A stretch of DNA of 64,000 nt from Bugula neritina (taxonomy: Eukaryota; Animalia; Bryozoa): positions 25,605,504-25,669,503 of the forward strand of contig OZ037765.1 in the NCBI GenBank assembly GCA_964035545.1, written 5' to 3'. Both the position numbers and the translations under genes were made by a program. The notes beneath the pieces are model-generated. The model searched no databases. It worked only from the letters and a program-made list of their open reading frames with translations, and was not told the DNA's origin. Below are positions 6,440-61,300 of this stretch, piece by piece (position 1 is the first letter of the stretch; each line of letters starts with the position of its first letter).

Positions 6440-9400
6440 ATGGCAAAAGTATTTAGACTAGACGAAATAAAAGAACACAACAATGGAAAATCAAGCTGGT
6501 TAATTATCCATGACAAAGTTTATGATGTAACAAAGTTCCTTGACGAGGTAGATTAACTTTAACAATAACTTCAAGATATTCATATTAATATTAATATTCA
6601 TATTGATATTCAAATTGAAATTCAATTTTATATTATTATATTTAATATTACTGTTTACAATTTTATCTTTACTGAATTTGGATTTAAATTTATGATTTAA
6701 ATTAGTTTATTTTCATTTTGATATTGAATTTGATTATATTTTAATTTGAATAATAATATTAATAATAATGTTGGTATCAGTATCCCTATCTTAATAGCTT
6801 CTAGATCATCTAGTATATGTTTAATAATGATTTTATATTCATTTAATTACACTACCTCTAACTGTAACACTATCATAAATCATTGGCGAATGATCCTTAT
6901 GAGTTTGAAATGAAAGCCATTCCTCTAAAACTAAAAGTTTTATTGTAAAAGTAAAAGGATTGTACCAAGCTCGGTTGACGTATTTTTTTATGTATTTATT
7001 TCACACCAGAGAAAATATTAGTGTATTTAATTTTTAATTTTAATTTTGGAACTGTCCATAGTCGAGATTCAAATTCAGCACTAATTTTTAAAAGTAAATA
7101 GATATCAATTATTTTTGTATATGACACTCAAAATAGTAAATGTAATAAACCTGCATTTGTATTGCTTGTAGTGTAAAAATATAACAAGGCTCTTTGTGAA
7201 TATGCAAAAGATTCTCTAATTGAAGGCCTTATAATACGACACAGTTATAACATGTTTTTACCGAAAAATCATAAATGTGATCAGCCAATTTAGATGAAAA
7301 CTAGTATGGCTAGATTCCTCGACTTTGAACTTAGTAATTGTGTAGTTTTCTCTAATCAATACTCAATGGAGTCTATTACATGAAACACACCATTACTACT
7401 ACTAGGCTACCAGCATATATTTCTGTTGTGATGATTATCTTTTAGTTGATTCCAGAAATTTGTGTTCATTTAGTCATTATAATTTTACTGGGATGCTATA
7501 TAAAGAAAAGTCTAAATATTTTTTTCATCTGTAACTCTAAATGCAATGTTATATTTTTAGCATCCTGGTGGTGAAGAAGTGCTTTTAGAACAGTCAGGTT
7601 AGTTTTCTTCAAATCTTTCAGTTGAATATAACTTAATCTACTTTGCAGGCAGCTGTACTAGTAACTTAAGTTATCTACTAGCAGCTTCAAAACCTTGTGT
7701 ATCTACAACTACTTTGCGCCAGGCATGCTTCAGATAGTTTTTAAGTTGCCGTATGCTCTTATAAAATATGTATGCCGGTTTCTTTTAAGATAGGTGTTCA
7801 AACAAAACTTGCTTGGTCATGACAGCTAAAAACTAGTATCAAATATTTTCAACCTTGCTTAAAGTTAAATTTCACAATGCTGCACCAACTGTGAATAACT
7901 TCACCTTGCCAAAATATTTTTAATGTTACGTCTCAAGTTATAGAATCTATGGTCTAGATTTCAACTTTGAAAAATAATGATGAAAAATGAATACAACATC
8001 AGTAAAACCAATTCCTGTATTAGGTGATAGTACAGCTGCTACAAGGCATTTCTTATGACGGACTATGCAACTAGATTTCTGACAGTTATGAAATATTTCA
8101 TGCGCTCTATAATTTGTAGTAACTACTAATAAAAAGTGAATGTATCACAATAATTATGCTGGTTTAGAAGATTTCAAATGTTTTGCATGAAACCCAATAT
8201 TTCAGAGTTATATAGCTGAGCAGATTTGGACAGAGTGTAGTTAATATCATTTGTTAGTGAGTCATTGGTTTTCATTCCTTAGTTGGAAAAGTCAGGTATC
8301 CACTTATCAACTTTCTTGTTTGCAGTTTCACTTTGTAATAACATCTAATAACTGGCAAGGCACAGCCATGGTTTAGTTATCAGAGTCCAGGCCCAGTAAG
8401 TGCCAGCTCATTTATTGCACTACAAAGAGAAGCTCTCAAACCATGTTGTCAGTATGATAAAAGTCGCTGTCTTTAGCCTGCCTATTATCTGGGGTTGTAA
8501 TAGTGGTAAAGGCATCAAATAAATGCTAATGTTTTTATATAAAGGCTGGGAGTTTCTTGATAACAATTATCTCCTTTCGTCAATCACAGTAGTTTCAACG
8601 GCATTCGTACCCAAGATCCTCTATTGGCTGCTCTACTGTGGACTTCTACCTTCTAGACTCTTATACCATAATATCCATGTTAGCCATGTTCAGTTCAGCG
8701 TAGAAAATAAATCAACCTTTATAAATATAAGTCTCTCATACTACAGCATAACTGACAAGGTGTATTACTGTCAAGGAGTGCTGTTTCTTCATTCATTTGC
8801 TGAAGTGTGAAGTATTGTCTACTTCCAGGCAAGGATGCAACTGAGTCTTTTGAAGATGTAGGACATTCCACAGATGCCCGTGAACTTATGAAAGATTACT
8901 ATATAGGAGACTTGCATGAGGTTAATATTCAGTTTTGTTAGTTCTTTAGTAGATATTAAAATATACTTCATAAAGCAGCATATGCTGATCACATTTTAGT
9001 CTAATCAATAATATGGAATCTAAATGCACGGATCATCCTAGAAAGTTTGGGATAGCTGCTAAAGTAGCATGTAACTAACAGTAGCTGGAGTAACATGTGA
9101 ACTGGGTTAGGCATTACACGAATTGTGTGCTCAGCATTGATTTCTTGGAGTTGCACAACAACTACATCAATAAGTTTCAACAACTGCACATCTCTGTAAA
9201 GCTACTTGTGCATTAAGTGGTTGAGCTGTCTTTAATAAAGATCTTGTGTTGTACGAAAAGTTAATATTTGATCAATATCTTAATTACAGACTATTATTTC
9301 TGTGAGCTTGTTCAAATTTAACAGTCTATATTTTATTGCCAGTAGGTTATTATTACTTGAATGTAGCCATGGTTTAGACTTTAGCATCTACTAGCTGTGT

Positions 9401-12223: not shown

Positions 12224-13285
12224 CTAAACAGAGTCTTTTTGAATGAGACAGATTTTCTGCTGGCACTCAAATAACTAGTATGAATTTTATGTTATATAGG
12301 CAAGTATAACAATAATTCTTATCTTCATAACAATAAAAAGCATACAATTAAATACACATCATTCAAACTGTACATCAGTTTTACCATGTTGGCTATTTAC
12401 CAATGTCTCTTTTATTGTATATAAATCTTGATTGAGTTCAAATTTTACAAGGGATGCACCGCACGATAGCATAGGCATTCTACTATTCATAAACATTAAA
12501 CTAAATCGTAAAAAGTGGCACAACTACTACAACGACAAAGCATCGAGTTCAAACTTATTTACACGAACAAATTTTTACAGCATGATTATGACATTTAATA
12601 ACAAAACTTGAAAAACTTTGTTCTACTTACGTTAACTTCTTTTTGCTGACTATGAAATGTGGCTTCATCATACGTTGGAGGATACATCATAGTTAATCTG
12701 TCTGGACAAGCTGAGAATTGACACTCTAAATCTGAATATAGTAAATAAACTCAAATAGTTTGTTAAATAAAATTATTGCTTCATTTCCTCATATTGAAGG
12801 CTATTTACTACTACAGCCATCAACACCTACAAATACTATTTTATTGTGAATATCTGCTAGCACAAGGTATTGCCTAATTCACAAGATATCTGAACTGTTA
12901 TACTAAGTGAGAATGTTGCATTTAAACTAATGGGTTGGTAATAGTATCACAAATATAATGAGACTCATAAAGTTGGATTATCTAAACTCAGCATAAAATG
13001 ATCTATTTAAAAATAAACAGTCTCATGCTCACCATTGAGATGGAGACTTCTAACATCACGTGGATTTCTTAGAAATTGCTGTAGCTGTCGTTGAATACGT
13101 CGTCGCTGCCTCATCCTGTGTCGGAGGTAGCACAATATAAACAAGAGCACACAGAGAATCATTAACATTACGGAGAATGGCATGAGGTAATTCATGTCTA
13201 TGAACCAATCAGAGTTGGGTCTATAACCAGGTACATCTGGAGTTTTTGGTGTTTTCATCGCGGGTATAGTAGTAGTTTCATTCAT
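12224..13285 (-). CDS. Small single-pass membrane protein with a PPxY motif (putative Nedd4-family adaptor). Exons 13285-13033, 12725-12631, possible last exon 12259-12224
   Basis: N-E-T sequon at the N-terminus, TM segment YLMPFSVMLMILCVLLFILCYL, basic stretch RHRMRQRRR. An in-phase splice (GTGAGC..TTTAG) leads to ECQFSACPDRLTMMYPPTYDEATF. The last exon is uncertain. A non-coding first exon probably lies near 15480-15600. Confidence 0.7.
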
Positions 13286-14075
13286 GATTTACAAATATGT
13301 AACCACCTGAAATTACAAATGAAACATTGATCTTGTATCTGTAAAATAGTTCAAAATTTACTAATGGTGCTAAAGCATTATGCAAATAATCCCAGCTCAA
13401 ATTCTCCTTAGAAGTTCTTAGTTTTACTTTATATTACGGAACTAAAATTAATCTTGCCATTGAATCATTTTTGGTTTGTAAAATACTAACCATTTTTCTA
13501 ACTCAGTATACTAACAGGCAAAATATGTTACAACAGTATGAAAATTTTCACAATTTACTTCAGGTTGACTGATGAAAAATAAAATAAATTTTATGCAACC
13601 GTAAATTTGTCTCTTGCAGCAATGTTCACATTTCTACATTGGGATAAGAACATATATGCATCATGTTTTTAATAAGCTCAATTTTTTACTAAATTTTAGG
13701 GTTTTAAGTTGAAAATGCACCAGCTATACTTTTTGAATAGCCACCTATTTTCTTGGTTGAAAAATTTGCTAAAATAGGGGTTCTTGAGCAAAGTTCAGAG
13801 AGTTTTGTTTTTGTCTATTTCAAAGAAATTGTGGTTTAATGTTTTTATATCGTCTATTTGTTTATCAAAACTTTTCGAGATATTAGGAAGATGATTAATA
13901 TTATGTAGTTTTATTGGCAGAGATTTTACATTAGAATGCAATTTTGTAATAATTAAAAATATAGTAGGCCTATATTATATCTACACATAGTAGAAATAAT
14001 TTACTCATAATTTTTTTCAATAAAAAATCATTTAAACAACTTAGCAGCATTAATATGTAGATATAAAATATATTA

Positions 14076-14141
14076 CTGCCGTTTCATTCGGACCAATGGA
14101 CCTTCCGACCAACGGGCCTTCAGAATATTGACCCAATCCCT
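14076..14141. repeat. Remnant of a small repeat/MITE end with three ~16-bp subrepeats
   Basis: TTCGGACCAATGGACC / TTCCGACCAACGGGCC / TTCAGAATATTGACCC form a GC-rich island in an AT-rich intron. Confidence 0.5.
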
Positions 14142-14169
14142 TAAATAATATCATAATGCATGTTTTATA

Positions 14170-15350
14170 ATCACTACTGCTATTAGTATTTGCAGTACCA
14201 ATAGTATTACTATTACTATTAGAATTGTATTTGATAATTTATTGTTTTGAATTTAAGTTATGATTACAGCTTACATGTTTACAGTTACAGCTCACAAGTG
14301 CAGGTGTTATTTTTATTTAAAAGTTTAATATATATAGAAACAATTGTCTCCTTCAGTATCGGTATCAGTAATACATACCGAATACTAATCTAAAATTGAA
14401 TCATAAATGTCACCAATATAAATATGAATATGAACATTAAACATTTATTATTGTACATTTTATTATGATGGTGATTATGATGTTTGATTACCATTATGAT
14501 TAATTTCACATTCACAGTCATTATCATTCTGATTAGCATTATAATTATGATAATGATTAAGGTTTATAACTTTTACTTTATGGCTATCGCAATCAGTATC
14601 AGTATGACTATGAGTATGACTATCATAATCACTATAATAGTGACTATAACTATAAGTATAACTGGGCATAAGCTAACTGTGAGATCACCATTAACTGAAT
14701 TAACTATTAGGTATTTCAATTTGTATGAAAATCATACAATCAGTAACAGTAACTGTAAGAGTAACACTAACAGTAACACTAACTCTGTAAGACCATGACT
14801 CACTTTGACTCACCCACTCACTGACTTTGAGTGTGTAACATTTAATCTTACACTAACAGTAACTGTATCACTATCACTGTGAGCATATCAGTATCACTAT
14901 AAATTAATGATAATCATATTCATAATGATAGTGATAGTTTCACTATGACTATGAGTGTGAGTATCAGTATCAGTATGAGTGAGAGTATGAGTCATGCTGA
15001 TACTTATAGTTATACCCCTACTCAGTATGAGTATGGGTATAACTATAAGTATAAGTATAAGTATCAGCATGAGCCATGACTCATGAGACTGTGTATGACT
15101 GTATCACAGCCAGTAATACTAATAGTAATAGTAATACTAATACTAATACTAATAGTAATAGTTATAACTATATTGTTATTATACTTATAGCAATTCCAAT
15201 TGTAAAACTCAAAGTGAAAGTAAAACTAAAAGTAAATGTTGAACTTGATCAGTTAAAGTTGAAGTTGATGCAAAGTTTTAGTTTATAAGTGAAGTCAGAG
15301 CCTAAAATCAGAAATGTCGCTCTACCAACATCAAACATGAACATGAAGTT
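14170..15350. repeat. (TNA-NNN)n 6-bp periodic tract, inferred first intron of the PPxY membrane gene
   Basis: TCA GTA TCA GTA TGA CTA TGA GTA TGA CTA TCA TAA TCA CTA TAA TAG TGA CTA TAA; TAA AAC TCA AAG TGA AAG TAA AAC TAA AAG TAA. Confidence 0.9.
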
Positions 15351-16624
15351 GAACAGCCCCATTTTAAATGCTATAACTTTTTTGCACTCAAACCAATTCT
15401 GTGAACGCATATTATAAATAATATTATAATATCAATATGGATATGCACTAAGCAATTAAAAACTACTTTATCCTGATGAAGTCACTGCAATCAGTGACAG
15501 TAGTGTGGCTCTTGGGCTTTAGAGTGCTCTTGTCTTGGGTAGATAACCAGTATAATCGCTTTAAACTATGATCGCCCCGAAATCTACTTGTCCAACATAG
15601 ATCTCGCCTTCATGGTCTACTCGCCCCACCTATGTGCGTTGCATGGAGTTATCTTCTGATTTTTTTGGTGAATAATGATGAATATTATTATAATTCTTGA
15701 CCAATGGCCGGTGTAACTTTTGCATATTTATCGTTTTAAAATAGTATTTAAATAAAATATTTGTTTTACTTTAGTGTAATATGATATCAATTTGAACCAA
15801 GCACTTAAAATGTCTCAGCTACGTGTATATAAATATACTTATTCTGAAATTTTCGACTAATGATGTAAAAGAAAATGATTTTAACTTATTACCTCAAACT
15901 CATAAAATATGCACCAGCAACGCGATTTTTTATTATATAATTTATGAATACTTGCGGAAAAATGTATTCTACATGTTATGTTATATGCTGCCTATAATAC
16001 AACAGGCACTGCATACCACACTGTTACAAACAGTATACATATTATCTTTCGAAACTTCTTCACTAAAAGTAGCCAACAAGATTATTTTTAGTTTTGTAGT
16101 ATTATATAGTTTTTCGAAATTTATTTTTGTAACCTTACTTTCACTGATTGTGCCAGCTTTAAATTTGTGCAAAAATTATGAAAATTTTAGAATACAGTAC
16201 ACTGGGGGTAGTGAAAATGCTGCTCCTACTTCTCAAGCGCCAATGTATCGAAGGCAGCTCCCTAAACTTTAATTATGTATGATGTAAAGAAGTCCTGCAA
16301 TTTTTATGAAAGATTTTTAAATTTAATGCAGTTTAAAAAATTTTTGTAATTACTCAGAAATTATGTTCAATATTTTTGAATGGATATTATTATGTTTCCT
16401 TTAGCTATGTTGACATGGATCTGAATTCATTTCAATATACACAAACTTGTGCTTTGGCCATGAAACTAATATTCTATGCTATATGAACTTTGTTGGTACG
16501 ATCAGTTCATGAACATGGTATATTGGACCAAGTAAATTCTAAGGCAAACAAGCTTTGGGACAAGTAACTAATACACATACATTTTGAAAGATAATGTTAG
16601 TGGTGCCGGAGTTGTCATACTTAT

Positions 16625-20250: not shown

Positions 20251-22609
20251 ATGGCGGACAGTATGCTCTTCAAGGCGCTCCAAGCTAATGCATCATCAAT
20301 AAACTTTAGTTGCAAAAAGCTCACAAAGATACCCAAAATTATAGGAAAAATACAGTCTATAGTTCAAATAGATTTAAAGGGAAACCAACTCAATGCATTA
20401 CCAGATGAAATTTGCAATTTGATTCAGGTAGCTAATATAAATATTCCGTATTGTCTATTAGTATTACTATTAGTATTGTCTATTACTATCATCTACTATT
20501 ACTTTTGCCTTTGGTATTAGTATTACTATAGGTATAACTATTAGTATTAGTATTGCAACTGCTACTGTCTGCTAGTATTGCTCCAACGTTGACTAACTAT
20601 GATTTTTAGTCTTAGTTTAAATACTATGATTACCAAACTTCTAAGACTGATGCGAAATATTTTTAAATGCACCTCAAAATTGCCTACTGCCTGGTCTACT
20701 TTTACTCTATAAACATTGCTCAAATAGTTTAGTAATAAGCAAATATAAATCAAAGTCGTAGTAAGCCACATTCATATTTTTGCTGCATTCAGGTGTTAAT
20801 GAGTTGTGCAAGTCAAGCTAATAATTTTAGCAGGCAATTCAAATAAAAAATTTCAAATACTCAAGTTAGCAAGTATTAGAGTCTATGTAAATTAGACCCA
20901 GTCTTGATAATAGAGTGAGCATGTGATTTAAAAAGCAAAATTTCAATAAGTATTAATGTTTATATGAATGAATGCCTAAAAGAAAATTGTATTGTAAATG
21001 TTAAGAGCTAGTCCTGTAATAATGTGCATAAAATCAATTCAATTTGTTTTAACCAATAATACTTTTCTTTACAGTTGGAACACTTGAACCTCGGCAATAA
21101 CATTTTTACAACTATACCTGTAAGCATTTCTCGGCTCTACACTTTACTGACTCTCCATCTCTTCCAGAATCAAATAGAATACATTCCAGAAGGAATTTTT
21201 GGTTCGTGCCATTTAAATATTTATTACATATACTCTCATCATGGTAGCTTAGTGGTCTCAAGCAAATAATGTGTTAATATTAACATCATCAAAAGTACAG
21301 TATTTTAATTCAATTTTGTGTTAAATAAAATGATTGTGTTTCATTGTAAAGTAAATTTGTTTATTATTCAAAATATGTCCTACAGGAAAACCAATTTTTG
21401 CGTTGCAGTCAATCAATTTGTTATCTTTATGTTTATAGCCAATCTCAGATTTCTGACTACTTTGAATTTAAATAACAACAGACTTGCCAAACTACCAAAA
21501 GACATATGCAACCTCAGAAGTATAGAAACTCTTAGTTTAGACAATAACCAACTGCGGTTCTTGCCAATTGAAATATGTGCACTGGGGAGATTGAAAGTTT
21601 TGAAAATTAGTAAAAATCGCTTGGAGCGTCTTCCGCTAGAGTTTGGTTTTCTCTCACAACTTGAAGAGCTGCATGTTCCACTGAACAAACTTCGAGAACT
21701 ACCAGAAGTAAGATATGATTAACTCTTTGCATTTAAAATTGAGAATTCATAGTAATATATGTGTACTGAATGCAAGCATATGTATAATACATGTAGATGC
21801 AATCTGCTTTAACAAATTTTATAATAGACACTTGCTTGAATTTTAACTTTTTCTTGTTTTATAAGTGTTTGTTTAGAATTTAATTTTAATCAAATGTTGT
21901 AAATTGCAGTAATTGTACCTTGCTATGGTGTTTTCAGTTTTGAAGTAAATACGTTAATTAGTAAAGAGAATATATGAGGGTCTGTAAAAATTTAAAATAA
22001 TGTGATTTTCCTCAATCTCTAAGCCACTACAAGTAACAAAAGGATACTGAAACATATTACATTACATTGCATAATGGTTATATTGGTATGAGTGCAAACA
22101 GCTGGCAAAGTCTGTAGTATGTTAGCAGTTTCAATATATGTTCAACTAATAAACATTTCATTATGATTTTAGAGCATAGGAAAGTGTTATAAACTAAAAG
22201 TTTTAGATGTGGCAGCGAATGATTTAAGAATATTTCCCACGGAGACAGAAGAGTTGCCTCTTGTTGAACTTCACTGTGAGGAGAACCCATTACTTTCACA
22301 TCTACCTGTTCACTCTATTCAAGAAGAAGAAATTCTCTCATTAAAGGAGCTTACTGCCAGATATATTATGACACAACTAAAAGACAGGTATACTATATGT
22401 TCTGTGCAGTAGCTTCTGTAATGGTTACTAGGTCATTTGACTTTATTTAGTACACATCAGCAAATTTTGACCAAAAACTAAAGTTTGCTCAAAATCGATT
22501 CAAATTTACGATATGGGGTAAATTTATGCACTGATTCTAGCTATGCATAACAAAAAAGGCTAGGAGGGGGTTTTGCAACATTAAAGTGCACCATCATTGT
22601 CATATGAGC

Positions 22610-22683
<74 letters not shown>

Positions 22684-33480: not shown

Positions 33481-33574
33481 TCCCACTACTGGGTTTGGCT
33501 AACGCGAACAGTTGACAAAATACGAATGGTAAAGTAATTGAGCATATTGCTATTAGTCCTGGAATAAACCCTGT

Positions 33575-33605
33575 TTAACCACCGGAAGCTCACCGGATGT
33601 ACAAA
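33575..33605 (-). promoter_or_regulatory. Probable distal CUEDC1 promoter (tandem ETS-like sites)
   Basis: ACCGGAAGC and ACCGGATGT lie 12 bp apart in a CpG-enriched patch adjoining the periodic tract. Confidence 0.45.
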
Positions 33606-40930: not shown

Positions 40931-43146
40931 GTAGAGTGCAGAGATTCAGCTAATCAACTTCAGCACTCCAAGCAAGAACAGCCACCTGGCATGATGATGA
41001 AAATTCTGCAGTGGTTTTATTGGACGTTGAAGCCACACCCACTATAAGGCATAATTTTGATTGAATAACACGACGCGGCTTCAAGTTGAGTATTGCTAGG
41101 AACAGCACCGGGTTAGGGGTGATTAAGTGCAGTATTTGCTTACACATTGTTATCCAAACTCTAAAATATATTTTTCAAAACACTGCACGCAATCACCTCC
41201 AACTTGGTGTTGTTTCAAGCGATTTTTTCCCAAATTTAATTCCGTCTAAGGTTTCACAAAGAGGAAGGATAACTACCGCACTAATAATCTGTACTGTTAC
41301 TGGCTTGCAGCTTGCTCTGTCCAATGACAACTTTATTCTACCTACCAACTATTCATGCAAAACCACAGCATAATGGTTTTGACCGCACTATTGCATTGCT
41401 AAATTAAATAATATAACAATTGTGAAAAGATATGAGTCATGAGATTATATTGACACTGCTTTAGCAAACACTACAAATCAAATTTTGAGGCTTGATATAA
41501 CTTTTCAGGTAGGTACATAAATTAGGAGTTTTCTTCAAATCTTTTTCAAGTCTATAACCCCGACACACGGTATCTATGTAGTACTGAAATATCCATATAG
41601 GCATTAGTTATCATCATAAAGTCTCTAATTTTTAGTATACTCACATTTTAAACTTCTTTTTGAAAACTATCGTGCAAAATATAACATAACATATTTACTT
41701 TTTGCATGACTTTTTTAAAATTAGATGCTAAGGCACATTGAAAAGTTTAGCCATCAATACAGGTTCATTTTTCTTATAAAAACAAACTGAAAACAAGCTG
41801 TTTGAGATCAGCTGGTATAGCAACATTTCATTTAATCAAATTATTTTATGGTCAGTTGAAGAAAATTGTAATCATTGTTGGTTTGTGTGTTTTGCTACAA
41901 AGTTTGAACATATTAAATATAATATTATTATATTACCACGGTTCTTTCAATTATCTATAGAGTTGTTTCCCATCCATGCAGAAACAGATTAGTGTTGAGG
42001 CGTCTGTGTAGTGTATATTTACACAAGTGTATAAGATACAACAGAGAGAGGAAGAGAGCATGACTGCAGGTGGGAAACAGTGATTTTATGAATGCATGAT
42101 GACAATAGTGAATGTCCAAACCAAAAAGCAGGACTACAGATTGTCTCCCTACTGATACATTTACTTCAGAGGCTTTACCTACAGCCACACAACATACTGC
42201 ATGTGTTCAGTAATGCAACGAAATCAAATAGTAAAAAAGTTTTTTCAAGTCAATTGCTTTTAAATGTGTGGGTGTTACAAATAGGCATACTATTTATTTA
42301 TTCTGATTTTTGATTATGGAGAAAAAACAAGCCAGCAAAAGTTAATTTCAAACCCAGTTATTGCAAATCTTGTGGGGAGATTTTAAAAATGCATGGATTT
42401 ATTTTATAGAATAATATTATATTTTCAAATGGTTATAAGTTGTACGTAAATAAGCTTATGTAGCTGATAGTAAATAGCAATTCCTACCACATTGATTAAG
42501 ACAAAATATAACAATACTCATACTAGTTCTAGTGGCACCATTATTAATTGGCCATATGCAATCTATGTGGTGTTTGAAAATATGCAGCCTCTCTTTTCAA
42601 TTTCTAAAGGTAGTTTACATAATGCACTCAGAGAAGAAAGCATTCATAGGTCCATGCCTTTTAGCAACTAAAAGAACAATTGAGCTATTATACTACATGA
42701 GGGCACAGTTGAAAAGATTCCTACAGCATTTAAAACCTCATTAAGCATGTATTAGTTTTTGTGCTTAAACTAATTTAAGGAATTATAACTGTTTTGTAAA
42801 TGTGAATTCTTCCTTAGTGATTAGAAATAATTTGCTCTAACATATCAATCAGCAGTCAAATCTCAACTGTAAAGGTTAGAAACAGAAGGTAAGTGTTCTT
42901 ATATGGTTTACAGTATTATGAAATAGGCTTAACAACAGATTTTTTTTATCACATTTTTGTAAGAATAATATAGTTAGAGTCAGTTTTCTTTTTAAGCGAT
43001 AACAATTTAAAAAATCAGATGTTGATGCTAAAATGTAACTTGATTTTTATCTTAATATTGTAACTGATGAATAATACGTATAAAAGGCATAGATGCTATA
43101 TTATTCTACTTTTAGCTATACATCTATCTATAGCTGATAGGTTACT

Positions 43147-49440: not shown

Positions 49441-49527
<87 letters not shown>

Positions 49528-52233
49528 TGTAGAAGATGAACACATACGTTGATATTGGGCGTAGATGACTGGATACCAAAAGGCGTTGAAGGTATTGGAG
49601 CAACATAATTGGTCCGCTGCAAAGTCATAACAAACAACAGTTAATACAGTATAGAGACATAAAATATACATCATCAACAATTAAAAACACCCAAAAAACA
49701 ATGGTAAATCATGTCAATTATGTAATAGATAGAACAAAGTTGGTACTAACACATCTAATGTACTCCAAAGAATCAAAATTGTCTTCCACATGGTGTCTAT
49801 AATACATAAATTTATAGTTGAACAACCTAGCTTTGTAATTACATTTTGACAGCAATGATCCATATATATATAGACTGTAATAAACTATTTTACTAGCAGC
49901 ATTACTAACAGCGCTGTTAGTGAGTTCAGCTTTGTCATGACCTGACGTCTCCATGGCAACCTCTAGGCAATCTTCACCATCTGACTCAAACACTTTCTTA
50001 TGTCCCTGGTAACTGCAGTTCAGTTGAAAAGATTTTTCTGTGATAGAATCATCTGGTGTTACTGCATTCTACAATATTTATAAAACTGAAGCAAAACTGG
50101 ATGCACACAATATTTAAAATTTTGAGTAAATAAAAAAACAATCATACTCACCTGCTCAATTTTAGCCGGAGAGGCTTTTTTTGACTTCTTTTTTCTGTGC
50201 TTTCTACGCTTTTTAGGTTTCGGCAGACTTTCTAATTCTGCAACTAATTGTTTTTCAATTGGAGTCAATTCAACAGATCTACTCTTCTTTATTTTACTAG
50301 CTCTACATTCTTCATCGCTTTCACTATCTCTTTCCTAAAAGATGTTCAAATTTCACAAACAATTTGTGTAGCCGTGTAGCCATTATAGCGCATTATGAAT
50401 CCAGTCTATTGCATGAGTTCAGTATTATATCATTTGCACATTCTAGTAACAATCATCACTTACTTCACCTTCTATACTCGAGACTGAACTGAGCTTGTCA
50501 GGTGAGTTTGTATCTACTTGGAGTTGTGTCCCCGGCAGACTATGATTTTCATGAGCACCACCTTCTGTATGAAATATACATAGAAGTGAGTAGTTATGCA
50601 TATCTTATGACTTTTTACAACATATATAAGAAGCAGTTATGTTCATTGGTTCACCTATTAACCAAAAACAAAAAAGCGGGTGTGTATTAACCAACAAAAA
50701 CAAAACTGGAAGTCTATACATGTCCATCAACAAAGTGCAAAGTAATCTCAGAAAAAAACATGTGTCTCAAGTTGTAAGTACTATAGATTTGCAAAATATA
50801 TTTATTGCCCGACTGCCTCAAGTTCCTCTGAATTTAAGTGTTAGGTCCACTTTCGTAGGTGTAGCTAATAGAGCTACCTACCTTTTCACTATTGGCATAC
50901 AAAAATAAACAGTATTATTACAAAAAGATTTGAAAAAAAGGATAATACAGTGATTTAGCCCGTCAAAACCTGAGGATTTAAAAAGAATGTACCTTTTCGT
51001 GAATTTGAGTTGTAGACATATGATTGGCTTTAATTTGTTGGTAAAAAAGGGAAAACACTAACCACAATAGATGAGTTCTAAGTTCAACACACTTTAATAT
51101 TCAAGGATTTGACATGACACAAATATGATGTGCTGAGAAGTTTGTAGTCTTTCAACTGTATGCACCTGCTGGTTTGTCTTTTATTTTAGTAATTGTCCCT
51201 TTGGTCTTTTTTCGACAATCTTTCTTTATCTTTTTTACTTCCAGTGTGTCACAAGTATCTGTAATAGCAATGTCACCATTTTGCTTCCTTTTTCTGCTTT
51301 GTTGGGTGAGATTAAGAAAACCTATTATATCATCTTCAACATCAACTTCACGGAGTCTGGAACCAAAATGGCAATTGATAAAATGCAACTTTTATATTTA
51401 TATTGATAGAAGTAATTATAATAAAATTAAAATATGTTTTAAACCTGTGCTAAGTTATACCAGATGCATAAATTTGCAAACTGAAAGCAAATAGTCAAAA
51501 ATTTTAATTGGCATTCTATTATTTGATTTAACTAAATTTTGCATAGCTAGCAAAATAATAGTTTTATACAGTAGTTCACATTATGATTGCTCAAACTTGC
51601 ATGATTGACAAATTTGGCCTATCAGTATCTAGCACTTAAATGGTTGTCTAGCAACAGGGATCTCAAAAATAAGCTAAACCCAACTTATAAAAAGTGATTT
51701 TGTTTTAAAATTCACACCTAATTATGAAATAGACTGCAAAGGTCTTTATATTTTATATGAATAATATATTTATTATTTATTAATATTATATATCAAATTG
51801 AAATTAAATTATTAATATCAATATTTTAATTTATATCAATATATGGTAAATTAAAATAAAAATCATCCAACTCTTATTCTACAACTTACAAAATTCGATT
51901 AAATGTAAAACTAAATAACTATAAGTATAAGGATGCTTTTACTTCCTCGAGTCTCAACACCTACCAACCTTAAAATTAAATAACTTACTCTACAATTTCA
52001 TTATCTCTGAAAATTTGCGAACAGGATTCCCAGGTTGGAATGATGGTATCATCAATATATAAAGCGACATTTGGAGATATCAATTTAAACTTTTTGCAAA
52101 TTTCTTTTAATAAAGAGCGTATCGTTTCATGTTTCTCATGATCTATTGAGTACCAACACTTTTGTTCTGAAGAAAAGTTACTTAGTTTTAATGTGAGCTT
52201 CACTCTACAGCATGAACTCATGGGCGGTGCCAT
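46853..52233 (-). CDS. COIL: Coilin. Approximate exons 52233-51989, 51357-51166, 50564-50464, 50334-50153, 50069-~49910, 49615-49547, 48687-48271, 48068-47872, 47578-47461, 47105-47023, 46902-46853
   Basis: N-terminal coilin domain (RVKL..KCW..LYIDDTIIPTWES..IFRDNEIV), Lys-rich NLS (PKKRRKHRKKK) and C-terminal Tudor-like region PKDYSPYPNLDGPPRNGDKLAFK|RLEVSADYTPVVSGYKEGVVLSYEP...LIEPKLITS*. Middle exon boundaries are uncertain. Confidence 0.9.
48941..49447. mobile_element. Inverted-repeat element in a coilin intron carrying a gene-like fragment
   Basis: 57-bp inverted repeats (48941-48997 vs 49391-49447, one mismatch) lying between (TA)n runs; GC-richer interior with splice sites. Confidence 0.75.
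49444..49525. repeat. (TA)n microsatellite; a shorter one lies at 48857-48880
   Basis: About 40 AT units, read directly. Confidence 0.98.
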
Positions 52234-52541
52234 GATAAATGACGTCTAACAAACAACGTCTATAAGACCAAAGTTAAAATCAGATATACCATAATTAATC
52301 AGGGCTCCGTAAGAAAAGCGGAGTTATAATGATTCTGTTATCGCTAGAAGCAGCACCGAAATAAGAGCGATTGAGTACAGTATTTGTATACACATAGTTG
52401 TATCCAATGTCTTTTCAGTGGTTGTATCTCTAGCCCCAAACTCGAGACGCTCCCACCCCGACCTAGTGCACTCAGAGAACACCAACTCGATGCTGCTTCA
52501 AGCGATATTCGATAGTGATGGTGGCCTAAGTCAATGCATTG

Positions 52542-55500
52542 ATGAGTATGTGATATGAACATAACCAATAATAATTTATAATAACCATAAGGCTACGCCT
52601 ACTCAGCTACTTCTATAGCCTACTCAATACTCATAGTAATACTCAGCATTATACTGATACTCACTCTCAGTCTGAATTTCAATTAGTCTCACTCTCAGCC
52701 TGACTCTGAGTCTCATACTCGTAGTCAAACTCAATGTCAGTCAGTATCATAGTGATAGTCATAGTGATAGTTAGACTTATACTGAAACACAGTGATACTG
52801 ATAGTGATACTCACACTGACACTGATGGTGATAAATTATACTTATAATTATTATTCTTATACTTCTAGGTATTAAATTATTTTCATTCTGGAGAAGAGTT
52901 CCTAACATTACATTGGTTTCATCCGCTCGAATTATGATGTCAAACTCAAAGGATGCTGCAGCAGTTGAGATAAGAAGCCTTCAAGATGAGGCTATGAGTC
53001 ATAGAAGTGAAAATGAGAGTGAAACTAGCTGCTCTGTGAATCAACTTATTGATATGAAAAAAGAAGACACAACTGATCTCATTGATATGAATAAGACACC
53101 AATTAAACCAGATAATCCAGAAGCTGTCAGCACATCTAGTAGAAGGTTAAATCGAATGAGAGTAAGTTGTGAGTTTTATTTTTTGCTCACTTTCCAATTA
53201 AATAGTTTTTAATTGCAATGTAAAATTGTAGATGTAAAATATGTAAAATTATAAATTATAGATATGTATTTATAGAGAAGAGGTCGGTTACATAAACGGC
53301 AAATAGAGTCTGCAGCAGAAGGTGTTGATTTAAAAGACGGTGAAGTAAATAATTTGAAACGTCAAAAAATAGATAATGAAGAAGATAATCTGCAGCACCA
53401 TCATGCTGAAACTGATTGGTATATTGAAAATGGTATGTTATATTTAGAACATAATATCTTATAGTTATGATGTTGTTACTATTACAACTTGAGAGTACTG
53501 TGTTTTCAGCCTTATACTTATTTTTAGGCTTGCGTAAAGTGTATCCTTACCAATACACATATTTGTGTTACTGTAAAGGTCGTTGGAAAGGTAAAACCAT
53601 TTTAGACGTTCTCAACAGCGAATTTATGTCTAGCAGCTTGGAGTTTCATGTGAGTACGATATTGCCATCTTTGCTCATGTTTAGACACAGAATTTCTAGA
53701 TTTGTAATTTTCAATACAAGCTGTATTCCTGTACATGTAGCATATGAATGTAGTAACTTTTTTACATAATGTTATGTATATTATGTTTTAGACTCGCCAG
53801 ATTGAAAATGGTGGTGTTAAGGTAAACGGGAAGTCAATTAGACCAGATTATACACTGAAAGGAAAAAATGAGCTGATATCTAACCTGGTTCATAGGTACT
53901 GCTGATATTTTTTTTAATATAACTTTTCATCATTTCTCATTTGTATATCATTTATCAGTTTATGTATCATTTTTGTGTATCATCTTCCCATTATAGTTTC
54001 AAAAGTAACAGCTATTTAGCAGGTTTATATGCAATAGCAAGATCTAAATTTACTTACTCTACTAAGAATAAAGTTAAATTCATTGAAAAATGGATACTCT
54101 GGTATAGAAATGCAACTATACTTAGAACAAGTATTACTTATAATACGACAATATATTAAGTATAGATGTTTATTCTCTTACATTTTCATACGATACATAT
54201 CTTTGGTAGTTTGAGCAAGCTATTTAATGATAGAAAAACGAACTAGCTCCAGGAGACCTTTACACTGTTTCTCTGTTTACATTTTAGACATGAGTTACCC
54301 GTCACTTCACAACCAATTCAGATTGTAGCCAACACTGATGATTATCTGGCAGTGAACAAACCATCATCCGTACCTGTTCATCCTTGTGGGAGATATAGAC
54401 ACAATTCTCTTACATTTATGCTTAGTAGAGATCATGGCTTTCACAACCTACGTAGTATGTACATGTGAATGTATATTATAATCAAAAGTAAATCATCTCC
54501 TCAATAGTTCAAATCTCAAAACTAGTCCTGCATAGCTCTTTTACTATTATATGTTAGAAAAGATATACGAGTATGATCCTGGTTGATAGAAAAAACGGTA
54601 AGACTAAACAAGTATAAAATGTGAAAAATATTTCTAAGTATGTAATCAAATAGCTAAACTACAATGTTGCTATACTATCTAACTTGGCTATTGTCAATAA
54701 AGATTGATGTTTGATTCACTCCAAATTAAGGCGTTTCGCATTTCTTTTTACATTTTAAATTAAGAAATATAATTTTTGATGATTTCAAATTGGCCAATTT
54801 TAGCACTGTATAGACTAGATCGATTAACATCTGGACTGATAATATTTGGAAAAAACTCGACCTCCACCAATGTTATAATGGACCAGATAAAAAGCCGCCA
54901 GGTGTCCAAGACATATCTATGTCGAGTTGAGGGAAGCTTTCCAGAGTAAGAAATCATAAATATTTACCACATAATGCATTAAGTAGACATTATTGTCTTG
55001 TTAAATAATCTTGCAGCTTGAAACACTTTTTTATCTTTAGGGGTAAAGTTGAGTGCAAGGAGCCGTTAGATAAAGTTCATCCTAAAATTGGGACCTGGAG
55101 AGTGAGAGATGGTGGCAAACAATCTCATACTATATTTGAAAGAGTAAATTGTAACGGAACTTCTAGCGTTGTCAGGTGTAAGTCTACATATGTTGCTGGA
55201 TGAGCAATACCTTGCTCATTAGCTAATTATATAAAGTTGTTTGTTTGGACCTTCATCCTATTTGTTTCTTTAATTATGTCTTATGCAAACGCATCTTATT
55301 TTTATAGTAAATCTATACCATGCATCTATTGCTCGGTTTCTCAAATTACTGTGTCAGTAATATACATGATGGGTTAGGTCGCTTTCATACCTTATAACTC
55401 AAATACTGCTCAAAGATAACATTTCTGATTTTAAATGTCTATGATACTATGCATTTATATTATGATATATAATTATTTGTTGAATATTGTCTTCAGGTTA

Positions 55501-57120
55501 TCCACAAACTGGAAGGACACACCAGATTCGAGTTCACCTTCAATTCTTGGGACACCCTATCCTAAATGATCCACTCTATAATGATGATGTCTGGGGTCCA
55601 TCAAAGGGCAAAGGAGGGCACTATGGCAAAACGGATGAACAGGTAAGTGTTATTTAAGCAATCTTCTACATGTTGCACGATAGTCAAAGATCAAGCTGTC
55701 ATGTTGCTTTCTTGTGTACAACGTGCTCTCTAAATTTGCTGTAGACCTTGAGGTGTTTCTAATGTAAGCTGGTGCGTAGTTCGTACTATGCCTAATGTTA
55801 TGTACGAGTAATAAAGTTGTTTTATATTTTTGCAATTTCAAGTCAAAGCAGTCAATTCTATGAAGAAATAATTTCACAAATGTTATTGGTGTCATAATTA
55901 GTTTATTTCTATTACTTTTTCAGCAGATCTTTTAGCACACAACTTTTTTGCCATCTATGTTTAACAATAACCTTTAAAACTTATAAAATACTTCTTCAAA
56001 AGTCTGGGTGTCAAGTATACGCTTGAATACGGAGATGTTAATTTTTTGGCTAATCTTTTGGCAGTTTGATTTCTAAAATTATAGAACAGTCAATATTATT
56101 TAATAAATATGCTCAGTAGCCTATTAGAATTTTTTCATTGCTATTTATTTATTGACTTAACTCTTGAAACAAATTTAAAATTACTAAATTAATATATTGT
56201 TTGACTGCTAAAATCTGGTGGTCTTTCGTCCCTTTGATTTCAATGGGTTTCAGTAAATAAAATTTGATGGTTTGTGTAGGATAATGTGAATAAGCCTTCA
56301 AAGGCTAAATTAACTTTTGACTTGTTATATTTGTTTCCGTAGAAACAGCACTTGTGATTTTCAATGAGCAGCAGCTATCTAGAAGTTGGCTAATTCATAA
56401 AGAATCAGTAACGATTACTATATATCTATTGTAAGCAGTATGACGAAACAAACTAAGCTCCTGCATCCATGTGTTTTAGCTATATCATGACCTTTTGGAA
56501 CTTCACTCAACCAAAATATTTGAAGATTTGGTGCCTGACACAGGTTCAGAAAGCAGCTCTTGTGTGGCTAACCCTAAACACCATGATCTCATATTCAACT
56601 CAAAACAAGATTCTGAAACTCATTTACTACGACTCACTCCTGATCCAAACTGTGAATTTTGCCTCAAAAAATATCAGGATCCAACGCCAGATAAACTTAC
56701 CATATATTTACACGCTCTATCTTACAAGGTAATTGGTAGTAATAGCTTGCAAACTAATTAAAATCTGAGTTTGTTGAAAAAGAAATTTGTGGTGACTCAT
56801 GATGGCCAGGGTTTTAAGCTGAATATTGTACTGTTTATTACTTTGGCAACATGATTTGAGGGCTTTTGTTGTGGCTCAGAAACGATTTTGATGCTCTTCC
56901 TGATATCACTCATGTCCTGGACTTTAACCTTTAACCTGTGCCATGCTGAGTCAGCACTCTAACCACTACACTACAGCTGCTCCTTAACTTGTAAGATAAA
57001 TGCACATTTCACCTATTTTTGACATTAACTATTATACTTCATGCGTTTTTTTAGGGCGATGGTTGGGAATTCAGCACTGAAGAACCTGATTGGGCCCAAG
57101 AAAACTGGTCACTTCAATAG
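52542..57120 (+). CDS. RPUSD2: RluA-family pseudouridine synthase RPUSD2. Approximate exons 52542-52545, 52869-53161, 53276-53432, 53529-53648, 53791-53894, 54288-54454, 54803-54945, 55041-55177, 55497-55642, 56480-56728, 57055-57120; alternative start 52934
   Basis: [126 protein letters not shown]. Confidence 0.95.
52560..52866. repeat. (TNA-NNN)n tract, RPUSD2 intron 1
   Basis: Runs of 9, 9 of 10, and 8 in-register TNA triplets with heterogeneous spacers (52631-52785). Confidence 0.92.
56905..56981 (-). mobile_element. tRNA-derived SINE head (degenerate) in the last RPUSD2 intron
   Basis: Reverse complement reads GCTGTAGTGTAGTGGTTAGAGTGCTGACT (A-box/D-arm-like) ... GGTTAAAGTCC (decayed B box). 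No intact cloverleaf. Confidence 0.55.
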
Positions 57121-58385
57121 AGTAGTTTCTATATATTATATTAACTACTAGTACAGTTTTTCAGTAAATAAAATGGCAGTAGTGCAAACAATTTTGGCTG
57201 TAATAATTTTTGTTGTATATAGTTGGAGATATGCACCAAACACCTTGTATGATTTAGTTTAGACTAAGCATCTAGGCGTTCTTTTTCTGATGAATGATAG
57301 TTTTTATACTCAGCATCATTGTCAAGATAATTATGCTGCTGTTACAAAGTTTTAATTGTAAAATTCTTAATAAAACAGTATAAAACAAAACTAATTTTAA
57401 TTTTGTATTGTTCAGCTTAAATTTTTACAAAAATTAACTTTTCCTTATTGGTAGGTTTTCAGTTAATCATTTTTTAAACAAAAATATGGGGACTAGAGCG
57501 TAAATTTGGAAAATTGTTGACCGTTTTACAATAGTTTACAAAGAAAATTAATTTTTAATTAGGTATCATATTTGCATATGTATGTATATATATTATGTAT
57601 ATACGTATCAGCTCTGAGTGGTCCAACTATCTATTGATGTGTAACTAGCACCCTTTATGTAGGAAGCTTTAAGTTTAGGTGGATGCACTTTAAGTTTATG
57701 ATCCTGCACTTTAAGATGAATTTGTGAGACTTAACTTAGCAAACAAAAAATGCAGTTTATAGTTGTGTATATTATTTGATTCATACTTTCGAGAATATAT
57801 AATTTCATTTATGTTCCATGGCAGTAACCAATCATCTACTGTGTTAATGGTTAGTTTAGGGTTGTATTAGTCGAACGCAACACTAGTTTAAACTTTAAAG
57901 CATGTTGTTTTTACTCTTCAGAGTTTTTTCATAGAGGTACAATTATTATATTCTTATTCAAATAATAATTATCATAAATTATATATTGCTATTTATAAAT
58001 ATCATTGATGAGCCTGATCACAGACATGTAATAATATATTATATATAGTATATTGCAATGAAGCTGATGATTACCATTTAGAAGAGATAAATTGTTGTTG
58101 AGTTATCCTACCATGCTATGTGTAAAACAGTTGTTGTATTAATTAAGGCTTTTTTCTTCTACGAAGTTTATACCAGTTTGCCGATTAATAGAATGACTTT
58201 AACAGTTACCAAATTTGAAAATCTATCTCGAAGTGTATACGATACAAAATTATGCAAATAATTTGTTCAGTTTCAGTTTGAGTTTAAGTGTTTCAATTTG
58301 TAGAAGGACTTGATGTGAGCCAAAGAAAAAAATCTCTCAATTAATTTAGTTTGAATTTTATCTAATATTTATTGCTAACACAACA

Positions 58386-61300
58386 ATGGCTTCTAAATAT
58401 TACTATAATCATACCAAGAGTAAGACTACTAACTTTAAACGGACAATTATTGAGGCCTCCCAGTTTTACCACTATGATAACGACTACCAGTACCATGGCC
58501 ATCATAATTTTGACAATCGACGTGACAGCAATTCTTCTATTTTCACTACATGTGATAGGAAAACCAACTCCAAGCTTGACCCTAACATTCCGAGTCTTGC
58601 TGGTAGCAGTATGAGTATTACTATTACTAGTAAAACTAAACGACAACGTAGCACTGAGACTCTCACTCTGACTGGCACCCGGCGTGGCATCTGCACAAGA
58701 CCTAAACTTAAAGTTGAGGGATTTACTACTACTAGTAACTTTACTAATAGTAATAGCAAGCCTAGTACTAGTAGCCATATTGATATACCCAAGGCTAATA
58801 ATAGTAAATGTAATACATTTACGTCTAGTGCTGCAGAATGTGATTCTCATTCTACATTTGGTTCACATTCACAACATGAAGCTGCTCTTGATATAAATAT
58901 GGATGTGGTAAATATGTTATCATTATGGTTGTAGTTAGGTATTCATATTGTATTGTGATTCAGCTCAAGTATTTGTCTTATTTACTTGTATTCTAAATGT
59001 ACTTTTCAGTATTTTATTGATATTATATCAATATGTAATGAACTAAAAAATTTTATAGTAAACTCATTAAAACTGTGGTTTCTTACAGTAAACTGTCATT
59101 CATTTGGATTTCATTTCAAGTTTAAATTAATTGCACAAAATTACATTTACCTTAGTTTTTAATTGTGTAAAATGTAGGTACTAGCAGTTACAAGCGATTT
59201 CTGTTAGAGATGAGCAGCTTGTATGTAGCATTTGGTTGGTTTAAGTTGCACTTGATTTTCCCTCACTGTTGCAATCAATGCCTGTACATGAAACCAACTA
59301 CATCAAAAATCAGTTATAATTTTTTGCAAATCCATTTGAATTGTCCATGTCCAATAAACTTATTGAATCATATACATATATGTTCTCTTAGGATACAACA
59401 GAAAAGTGGGAGTATCCAAAATATAAACACAAAATTTCTAGAATTAAAGAAACCTGGAGACACACTCTAAAAAAGACGATCGGCAGGCGACGTAGTGCCA
59501 GAATAAAGTCAATGAATAATAGAAGATATACCATGTCAAATTATGCTTTTCCCCTTGGAAACAGTTTTGATTATTTCAGGCTTCTAGACTCTATGAAGGA
59601 TTTGGGTGAGGTAATACATTTTTCAATCAAATATGTATTAAATTTGTTCTCTAAATTTTCTGTTGAATTTTTTTCTTAGCCTACTGAGTTAATATGAGTA
59701 TATAATATGATGAAATCAAGTCACTTAAAATTTGACGTAAGTTACAAAATGTTTTCGTGTGTGTGTGTTTCGAACTCACAAAGCACCGGTTTTTTTAGGG
59801 GTTGTCATCTCTTTGTAAAAATTCTTTGGCTTTAAACATATTAGCCTCACTAGTTATGGCCGTATCGATCACCACTTATATGACTTTCTAGAGCTTATTC
59901 TTGACTTTTTTATTTGTGCCTTTGAAGTAATTTGATGGAATTTATAGAAATTTGCAAAATCTATAGTAATTTTCTAAATTAAACAGTTTCACACAAATTT
60001 ATTAGACAAAACCTTTTTTCAAGTATTGACCTCTAACTAGCACCAAACTTTTTTATGTGATAAGGGTCAAGCCTTAGGAAATTAATCCACCTAGACATTG
60101 GACCTCAATGTTTGCAGAAGAATTTTGAAATTTCTACTTCTAAGTAATATGCTTACATTTTATCATCACTTTTCAACTTGAGTTTACTAAATTTTTAAAA
60201 AAATGTTATAATCATTGAAACATCTGCAATCTACCAATATGGGTTTAAAGAGTTGTCTCCTCAACACAAAAGCTTTGTGTCACTTGCTGGTTTGTATATT
60301 TGGTAAGCCAACTTTTTAATTGTTTTTGCTAGATGCTGAAAATTCTTGCACCAAAAAAACTTTTAAATTTTGTTCAATGCTTGCCTCATTTTTGTGAAAT
60401 GTAAAACTTATTTAATTTTCATAAATGGGCTGGTGAAAACAGTACGATTACAGTTGTGCTTTTTATTTATCAGTTGCTAACAAGTTTACTTATTTATATG
60501 TAACCTTCAGGGGGGGGGGGGAGATTTTTGCTTTGCTTTATCATTTATTTTTAATTTACTTATTGTAATAATTTTACTACTTTTATTTCATATAAATTTA
60601 TCCAAGGTTATAAACAGATGTGGCATAAATATAAAATATCAAGCCCTGGCATTATAATTTTATTGTACTGCTGAAATAGTTTCGGAGTTATTATCCCTAT
60701 GCAAGTAATGCCCTCCTATGGGCATTGTAGTTTGTACTCTCAGACCAACTTCAAGTTGAAATTATTTCAAATGTGACGGGAAATACCTTTCATCATTATC
60801 ATCAATAGAGTTTTCTCATACAATATGGTGTAAGCGCAATATTATTATTGTGGTGGGTTCTAGAATGTCGAATGGTATACGGTAGTATACTTGCTATACG
60901 TTGAAAATCATAGTGCTTCGCGATTGGCTCGTTCCGGTCTAGTTGTAAGAATAGTAAAAGTTGACTCATATGAAGCCGCATCATCTATTGTTATTCAGAC
61001 CATTGTACACTGCTACTGCTATAATATTATTTGTAATACTGGTAGCCGTTTCATTTATTGCTCACGTGTGGTTACTATCAAGTGCGGAGAAATCTCTTAG
61101 GGCTAAGCTGGGATTATACTTCAATATTACAACGGCTATTATATCGGAGTTCAGCGAACAGACATTTCTTCAACTACTGCAGTTCTACAAGACATAAATT
61201 TACACTGTTTATCATTTTGGCAATATACATACAGTACACTCTCGGTTGGCTGCTACTGTAAGGCAATTCTGGTAAAGATAGGACTCGAGTGCTAAGTACA

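Follow-up and report, generated by a model that had tools for sequence, protein, structure and literature searches.

What is the six-base rhythm that follows gene starts in the bryozoan Bugula neritina: a repeat, a signal or a scar? The question is raised by a 64,000-nucleotide stretch of chromosome 1 (25,605,504-25,669,503, A+T 68%; hereafter the window) in the assembly tzBugNeri2.1, which comprises 216.00 Mb in 320 scaffolds plus the mitochondrion, chromosomes 1 and 2 measuring 35.64 Mb and 33.58 Mb (PMC11480708). A first-pass annotation of the sequence had described eight tracts in which T-x-A recurs every 6 bp across a freely varying spacer, on the transcribed side of most promoters. Here we show that the tracts exist but obey a different rule: they are built of AT-rich hexamers in which the A/T columns are copied faithfully from unit to unit and a C:G pair, standing in an A_T or T_A frame, is strand-blind. 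Our leading explanation, to which we give a little less than an even chance, is that these tracts arise at the level of DNA, as a by-product, specific to this lineage, of unstable repeats at transcription starts.

A blind scan of base identity at lag 6 (sliding 120-bp segments, threshold 0.5) recovers all eight tracts, at 6499-6831, 14165-15318, 20416-20632, 32649-33381, 40290-40840, 51740-51885, 52576-52911 and 58552-58729, and elsewhere in the window matches just two (AT)n microsatellites, at 22613 and 49444. Lag-6 identity in the tracts is 0.47-0.55 against a background of 0.29, and 2,265 positions exceed the threshold compared with a mean of 1.6 in block shuffles. Over the whole window base identity is elevated at lags 6, 12, 18 and 24, and lag-3 identity is lower than lag-6 identity in every tract. 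A finer scan contributes only two further short segments (28824-28901 and 51380-51434). The two perfect microsatellites, (AT)34 at 22613-22680 and (AT)41 at 49444-49525, lie in later introns or intergenic DNA and act as ordinary repeats.

As the annotation had held, the tracts are neither one transposon family nor a microsatellite, and they keep their periodicity after masking of perfect microsatellites. Perfect runs of at least three copies make up 0-4% of each tract and their removal leaves the lag-6 signal unaltered, while Tandem Repeats Finder picks up tract fragments only, as short period-6, 12 and 24 arrays. The longest alignment between any two tracts spans 73 bp, and every inter-tract alignment passes through common hexamer runs. 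No transposon ends, transposase open reading frame (ORF) or intact element adjoining any tract was seen among the window's ORFs and the inter-tract alignments.

The grammar of the units, measured by context-filtered lag-6 pair counts between neighbouring units, departs from the earlier description in two respects. T-x-A is not a distinctive invariant: the probability of TNA at +6 given TNA is 0.44 (lift 2.85), but ANT, TA and AT are equally periodic (0.40, 0.43 and 0.41), TNA links occupy 0.2-0.6 of hexamer slots, and every base is periodic. The specific signals are AST and TSA (S, C or G), with lifts of 5.8 and 6.4 and free C/G orientation. Nor does the spacer vary freely, since a few hexamer families, with C and G collapsed, recur in 4-6 of the eight tracts: TSASTA (14%), ASTAAT (11%), ASTATA (7.6%) and ATATTS (6.7%). 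A single tract contains many different units, and many units have two or three S positions or none. The C/G positions fall on an every-second-base sublattice, separated by A/T runs of odd length (1, 3 or 5); AST and TSA account for 25% and 20% of C/G frames against 9-10% for ASA or TST, and ACT and AGT are the sole C/G-containing trinucleotides clearly enriched in the tracts (1.8-1.9x).

It is at the C:G pair that neighbouring units differ. A and T are kept from one unit to the next in about 76-81% of cases, whereas C meets C in 50 pairs and G in 65, and G meets G in 50 and C in 47; within the window, C<->G mismatches are 5.3 times as frequent as expected and transitions are under-represented. 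The immediate frame governs this behaviour. An S in complementary flanks (A_T, T_A) is the same as its neighbour at a rate of 0.35 and flipped at 0.50 (n=387), compared with 0.67 and 0.11 in like flanks (A_A, T_T; n=66). Flip rates of 0.52 in TASTA, 0.60 in AASTA, 0.55 in SASTA and 0.00 in SASAS indicate that the 3-mer frame alone matters, and in the 5-mer context comparison longer palindromic context brought no rise in flip rate. A/T centres in the same A_T/T_A frames flip in just 14% of cases.

The same behaviour extends beyond the window. In an independent sample of two 100-kb stretches from chromosomes 1 and 2 (200 kb), we found 16 more period-6 tracts, which take up 1.9% of one stretch and 4.3% of the other, with C<->G mismatches at 5.7 times expectation; dinucleotide microsatellites of the same genome have C<->T mismatches instead (7.1x). 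Across the B. neritina genome (ASTAAT)4 has 8,446 matches, among which pure C (151) and pure G (117) arrays together make up 3.2% against the 12.5% expected if positions were independent, and strict CGCG alternation makes up 9.9% (832) against 6.25%. A control of identical composition with an A_A frame, (ASATAT)4, has 896 matches, and those listed, 100 of 100 pure, come from a few long arrays; (ASAAAT)4 has a single match, which is pure, and (AYTAAT)4 has 200, of which 151 are pure C and about 49 contain T. Among the 346 (ASTAAT)4 matches in 120 metagenome contigs from other organisms, 324 (94%) are pure, neighbouring units being flipped in 106 cases and the same in 1,422. The purity of the control and of the metagenome arrays means that scrambling is specific to the frame and to the B. 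neritina lineage. There is one exception: a marine metagenome contig (L042:1-1238, Ga0115005_10312264) carries scrambled (ATTAST)n tracts at 1-245 and 600-875, flanking a GC-richer core of about 350 bp that resembles a bidirectional promoter, and matches B. neritina through the arrays alone, at 75-80% identity. From its sequence, the source of this contig appears to be a second organism with the same lattice.

These counts bear directly on the simplest account, in which the tracts are ordinary decaying hexanucleotide microsatellites, members of a transposon family or a periodicity that arose by chance in DNA rich in A+T. The short arrays picked up by Tandem Repeats Finder would fit it, as would the whole-unit length of some of the indels that separate two lineages of the species (see below). 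However, shuffling yields essentially no tracts, perfect repeats and inter-tract alignments are as limited as described above, and the mismatches are C<->G rather than the transitions seen in the genome's own microsatellites, and differ also from those of (ASTAAT)n in other organisms. A hexanucleotide microsatellite consists of near-perfect copies of one unit with transition-type variants, and a transposable element or miniature inverted-repeat transposable element has one consensus and defined ends; the tracts have neither set of properties. We therefore regard this account as scarcely credible.

The tracts and the exons that anchor them are as follows.

6437-6546, plus strand: first coding exon of CYB5; its translation begins with Met and holds the conserved b5 N-terminal motif, and the HPGGEEVL exon is next at 7558-7599.
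6546-6880, plus strand: hexamer tract in the 5'-most part of CYB5 intron 1; lag-6 identity 0.51.
14165-15350, minus strand: largest tract, in a small transmembrane (TM; PPxY) gene; lag-6 identity 0.55 across 1,154 bp.
20428-20640, plus strand: tract in the 5'-most part of intron 1 of a leucine-rich repeat (LRR; LRRC69-like) gene, following a Met-initiated exon.
32400-33480, minus strand: CUEDC1 tract; lag-6 identity 0.52.
40290-40930, minus strand: FBP1 tract; lag-6 identity 0.53.
51740-51988, minus strand: tract in the 5'-most part of COIL intron 1; lag-6 identity 0.49.
51989-52262, minus strand: COIL exon 1, from RNA contig pieces; a homologue (P0001) has a weak Coilin_N match.
52560-52911, plus strand: tract in the RPUSD2 5' region, a putative intron of the 5' untranslated region (5'UTR), partly within RNA contigs; lag-6 identity 0.54.
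58260-58960, plus strand: RTKN tract, the weakest; core 58552-58729, lag-6 identity 0.47.

In CYB5, the LRR gene and COIL the tract site is the 5' start of intron 1, and the tracts begin 20-100 bp past the exon-1 donor. For COIL this is backed by RNA contigs of two studies, which cover exon 1 (51989-52242) and connect 51989 to 51356 (CT..AC, or GT..AG on the minus strand), placing the 51740-51988 tract in the 5' part of intron 1. In CYB5 the GT donor is at 6547 and the periodic run starts about 25 nt further on, the Cyt-b5 Pfam match lying in the exon at 8804-8938; in the LRR gene the donor is at 20428, periodic units start at most 20 nt after it, and LRR Pfam matches lie downstream. In the other genes the same site is probable. 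The TM (PPxY), CUEDC1, FBP1 and RTKN tracts are upstream of the first coding exon, from which we infer a non-coding exon 1, and the first three each adjoin a CpG-rich block. The TM tract lies between a block at 15466-15700 (13 CpG, 15501 bin) and the first coding exon (ORF 13010-13288, minus strand), the CUEDC1 tract between a block at 33500-33720 (13 CpG, 33501 bin) and the exon 31007-31273, with the CUE domain exon at 29926-30129, and the FBP1 tract between a block at 40950-41370 and the exon 39530-39715, the FBP-like exons, read from the ORF list, spanning 35241-39715 on the minus strand.

Two genes remain. The RPUSD2 tract falls between a CpG-rich block and the ATG exon, in a 5'UTR intron or the 5'UTR itself: RNA contigs begin at 52747/52767 and extend to 53161, one of them probably has, by depth arithmetic, an extra piece of about 69 nt within 52400-52599, and there is a possible donor near 52543 and a possible acceptor near 52868. 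Hundreds of 37-44 nt pieces of unrelated contigs in DNA runs stack up at 52740-52835 in this tract, which shows that identical hexamer runs are present at many loci and that assemblies from short reads are broken at such places. The RTKN tract is 3.3 kb upstream of the HR1 exon (HR1 Pfam match 62240-62428); no CpG-rich block stands out, and the promoter position given for this gene is a guess. An open frame of 194 aa (58350-58931), which starts near an ATG and has no Pfam match, crosses the tract and may result simply from stop-free hexamer units. Coding low-complexity repeats are otherwise a poor description of the tracts, as the RNA contigs splice out the COIL tract and lag-3 identity stays under lag-6 identity in all of them, though the RTKN tract, with its open frame, may be an exception.

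At six promoters high lag-6 identity is confined to the transcribed (gene) side, and the COIL/RPUSD2 bidirectional promoter has one tract on either side. The claim of promoter-proximal placement is borne out by this asymmetry, with the reservation that some of the promoter positions are themselves inferred. That most promoters of the window carry a tract is accurate as a majority statement (eight of about 11 gene starts), but no tract was found in the window at the NDRG start, nor, probably, at those of two unnamed genes. The annotation's observation that strong tracts are absent from later introns stands for this window, where none of the RNA-confirmed or homology-inferred later introns has one. 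The gene names, for which Pfam searches were made of single exons rather than of joined spliced models, are supported to different degrees: Pfam matches name CYB5, the LRR gene, CUEDC1, COIL and the HR1 (rhotekin-like) gene, along with NDRG and a GCP gene of which the window holds the 3' part only, whereas FBP1, RPUSD2 and the small TM (PPxY) gene were identified by reading exon translations, in the case of RPUSD2 with RNA contigs as well. The sole Pfam matches of the TM gene fall under the curated cut-offs.

In the 200-kb sample first exons are mostly non-coding and ORFs therefore uninformative, so that gene starts were located by CpG and strand-skew proxies. Tract flanks there are enriched in CpG (p=7.5e-4). 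A T/G-rich skew of the sense strand, which holds for 9 of 10 genes in the window, is directed away from the far-side CpG-rich flank in 11 of the 16 sample tracts, including all five testable tracts with clear CpG asymmetry. Taking window and sample together, the tracts' own strand skew agrees, in 19 of 24, with the direction that the CpG-rich side predicts (one-sided binomial ~0.003). Ordinary introns of these genes have this skew too. The T-rich orientation of each major hexamer family is favoured on the sense strand, and both orientations of every family occur there. The kept feature is strand-symmetric for C:G, and strand-specific only in a mild T/G skew common to all transcribed DNA.

Such placement raises the possibility of an RNA-level signal at the start of intron 1, for example arrays rich in U or made of pseudo splice sites, which would assist the recruitment of U1, elongation or intron-mediated enhancement. 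The tracts do occupy transcribed intron DNA directly past the first donor, and both the sense-strand preference for T-rich orientations and the agreement of skew with inferred transcription direction in 19 of 24 tracts would be expected of such a signal. Against this, strand-blind C/G alters the RNA at each flip, the sense strand carries both orientations of each family, ordinary introns of these genes show the same skew, and poly(A)-signal hexamers are not depleted. We consider an RNA-level signal very improbable. Avoidance of poly(A) signals as such was rejected, their density being 2.76/kb compared with 2.78/kb in other introns, with 13 observed and 12.0 in shuffles.

A second B. neritina lineage shows how the tracts change with time. 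A Logan contig (L021) from this lineage, with a COIL exon 1 protein 95% identical to that of the window, covers both COIL/RPUSD2 tracts and keeps the period-6 signal at both places. The tracts diverge at a neutral rate: tract columns carry 11.1% substitutions, compared with 10.7% for the rest of the aligned columns and about 13.6% for other non-coding DNA, and the fraction of sites that are the same is 0.815 for S and 0.910 for W (A or T) in tracts, as against 0.791 and 0.897 in other non-coding DNA (n~500). The substitution spectrum of the tracts is ordinary and transition-dominated. Fast ongoing C<->G point mutation is not supported as a source of the scrambling, since only 5 of the 60 tract substitutions between the lineages are C<->G. 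Turnover is instead indel-driven, with one indel per 45 aligned bp and lengths of up to 36 nt; among the 12 indels in aligned tract columns five are multiples of six (6, 6, 6, 24 and 36), and others measure 4, 16 and 28 nt and may be alignment gaps that were split. In A_T/T_A frames flips account for 5 of 52 sites and other changes for 4 of 52 inside tracts, compared with 4 of 109 and 16 of 109 outside, so that a suggestive excess of flips between orthologues may exist at these few sites.

At the syntenic locus of Watersipora subatra (L142:1-23235, OY755158.1, 23 kb), which has a homologue of the TM gene and conserves with Bugula the gene order NDRG, small TM gene, CYB5, no period-6 tract occurs and identity at lag 6 does not rise above background; nor is there such a tract in L143, a third syntenic contig. 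The lattice is not common to cheilostome bryozoans at the NDRG-TM-CYB5 locus. Conservation among relatives, which the first-pass annotation had put forward as a check, thus extends to the sibling lineage, which keeps both tracts, and fails at the W. subatra locus, in keeping with its description of the tracts as lineage-specific. It had also offered three readings of them; we favour the third, a promoter-linked mutational scar, which the neutral-rate divergence and the absence from Watersipora would support.

The account in these terms runs as follows. The tracts belong to a genome-wide class of imperfect, AT-rich arrays of hexamers, which occupy the initial 0.15-1.2 kb of non-coding transcribed DNA next to promoters and usually begin 20-100 bp past the exon-1 donor. 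Each unit holds one to three C:G pairs on the every-second-base sublattice, their orientation in A_T/T_A frames being effectively random or slightly alternating, and the arrays grow and shrink chiefly by way of frequent indels, some of which span whole units or a multiple of six. The conserved property belongs to the duplex rather than to one strand. The placement, grammar, lineage specificity, neutral-rate divergence and indel-driven turnover are observed; the process behind them is our proposal. Tied to transcription starts, it would combine local repeat instability with a repair, recombination or template-switch step that creates, or fails to homogenise, C<->G complement differences in self-complementary frames. 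A base-by-base sequence code would be less likely. Neutral-rate drift, indel turnover, variable tract length and the absence from Watersipora all favour a by-product of a DNA-level process over a maintained element.

The competing possibility is that the lattice is a selected duplex-DNA element, in which C:G pairs, oriented either way and spaced 2, 4 or 6 bp apart in a fixed A/T frame, would be read by a chromatin or polymerising DNA-binding protein, or would set nucleosome occupancy, and so mark the transcribed promoter-proximal zone as CpG islands or the periodic An/Tn clusters of Caenorhabditis elegans mark theirs. An orientation-blind C:G pair with A/T identity kept is what a strand-symmetric reader would tolerate. 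Pure runs are depleted fourfold and alternation is enriched 1.6-fold, which needs more than neutral flips; the few hexamer families shared among tracts, the sharp placement past the exon-1 donor, confined to the transcribed side, and the persistence of both COIL/RPUSD2 tracts in a lineage about 11% diverged point the same way. Pure-run depletion, recurring families and sharp placement are what keep this possibility alive. It must nevertheless accommodate a base divergence near that of other non-coding DNA, with no constraint visible (n~500), a syntenic Watersipora locus that does without tracts, NDRG and probably two more genes of the window that also lack one, and an eightfold spread of tract lengths, and on balance we judge selection unlikely, though a serious contender.

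Several observations weigh against the by-product explanation itself. Flips between orthologues are too slow to saturate the differences between neighbouring units while A/T columns remain 78% alike. Independent flips at any rate cannot lower pure runs below 12.5%, so that something, either unit birth or selection, makes neighbours unlike, and the force favouring unlike neighbours could equally be selection. A selected element would likewise account for the abrupt beginning of the tracts past the donor and for their confinement to the transcribed side, and the 5' positions of four of the eight genes are placed by CpG blocks rather than by RNA. To our knowledge, no mutational process has been shown to give complement flips only in A_T/T_A frames. 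Micro-inversions of 2-5 nt are not enriched (12/150, 4/71, 1/39 and 0/23), and although the real C/G arrangement folds back better than C/G-permuted versions (p=0.002, 65 segments), the bias is small (mean z -0.50).

The nearest described mutational processes are short-range template switching and quasipalindrome mutation, which are reported to produce complementary-base changes in inverted-repeat contexts through multi-nucleotide events with longer arms (PMC7954356, PMC8604942). The flips in Bugula share with them the need for a self-complementary frame and the slight fold-back advantage; they differ in that the 3-mer frame alone counts and multi-base inversions are unenriched. Taking the two more consequential outcomes together, we see a possible but distinctly less than even prospect that the lattice is either a functional, lineage-specific duplex-DNA mark of transcribed promoter-proximal DNA, with C:G pairs in either orientation on a 6-bp grid, or the footprint of an undescribed repair or template-switch pathway that writes the complement into self-complementary trinucleotides at gene starts.

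Stacked insertion and excision footprints of a promoter-preferring cut-and-paste transposon would provide another way to generate flips. In footprints of the Tc1/mariner type, annealed identical 3-nt overhangs leave a central like-with-like mismatch that is fixed either way. A unit would then consist of a target duplication and a 3-nt remnant, flips would arise at birth and only in frames whose outer bases pair, and growth would proceed in fixed steps, all of which matches the frame dependence and the unit-wise indels observed. However, no transposon ends, transposase ORF or intact element was seen beside the tracts, many units have two or three S positions or none, and the common families cannot be neatly divided into a target duplication and a palindromic-frame remnant, so that we hold such footprints to be very improbable.

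How do the tracts relate to known sequence classes? The concept of cryptically simple sequence reportedly goes back to Tautz, Trick and Dover in 1986. The Bugula tracts belong under it in that scrambled short motifs are locally over-represented without long perfect repeats, and they share with that class a patchwork of short scrambled tandem motifs, growth and shrinkage partly by whole units, and fast indel evolution. They differ in that the scrambling consists almost wholly in the exchange of a single base pair, set in a self-complementary frame, for its complement, that perfect runs are under-represented rather than the source state, and that the arrays keep to the beginning of intron 1. In C. 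elegans, runs of A or T with a period of about 10 bp occur in the introns of many genes and have been proposed to act at the level of chromatin. Both signatures are lineage-specific, periodic and non-alignable and lie in introns of many genes, but the Bugula period is 6 (identity at lag 10 is 0.285, equal to background), its content is AST/TSA hexamers, and it is restricted to the 5' end of the first intron. CpG islands are likewise promoter-linked composition signatures that are unalignable between genes. By contrast the tracts have a G+C of 0.18-0.35 and 1.0-5.7 CpG per 400 bp, where the neighbouring promoter block has 9-14, and they lie beside this CpG-richer block and not on it. Human promoters, according to one survey, are enriched around the transcription start in short tandem repeats that are mostly pure and either GC-rich or dinucleotide (PMC3566118). 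Tandem repeats are thus concentrated at gene starts in both organisms; unlike the human repeats, those of Bugula are kilobase-scale, imperfect, AT-rich hexamer mosaics found on the transcribed side only.

Among open-access papers and preprints, a description of the lattice was not found in the two B. neritina genome papers, the Flustra paper, a tree-of-life survey of short tandem repeats, or the literature on 6-bp periodicity, first introns and bryozoan repeats. We class the tracts as a new form of repeat DNA that is cryptically simple and lies close to promoters, and there is a substantial chance that the process or mark behind them is of a new kind.

The signature covers about 2-6% of the sampled DNA, in addition to marking the majority of gene starts in the window. 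If it is a mutational scar, it would record a DNA process linked to transcription starts whose outcome is very unusual, namely complement swaps in self-complementary frames and unlike neighbouring units, and could serve as a natural mutation-accumulation experiment. If it is selected, it would be a novel type of sequence mark close to promoters, in an animal genome rich in A+T, with a role comparable to that of CpG islands or the C. elegans clusters. Should either a functional mark or an undescribed pathway prove true, the lattice would be a new kind of genome feature and not a repeat curiosity. At a practical level, it predicts B. neritina first introns and gene orientation from sequence alone, and it breaks short-read assemblies at gene starts.

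Two further observations concern the locus more generally. The public runs containing the stretch include a 2016 'symbiont metagenome' study, and runs labelled as the same organism differ from the assembly by about 2-6% in ordinary DNA at 50400-56399, while the Logan contig differs by about 11% in non-coding DNA; this divergence is consistent with several cryptic lineages within one species name. Finally, a 21-bp minisatellite (63792-64000; 10 copies, 96% identity) lies in the region of the rhotekin-like gene and extends past the end of the window.

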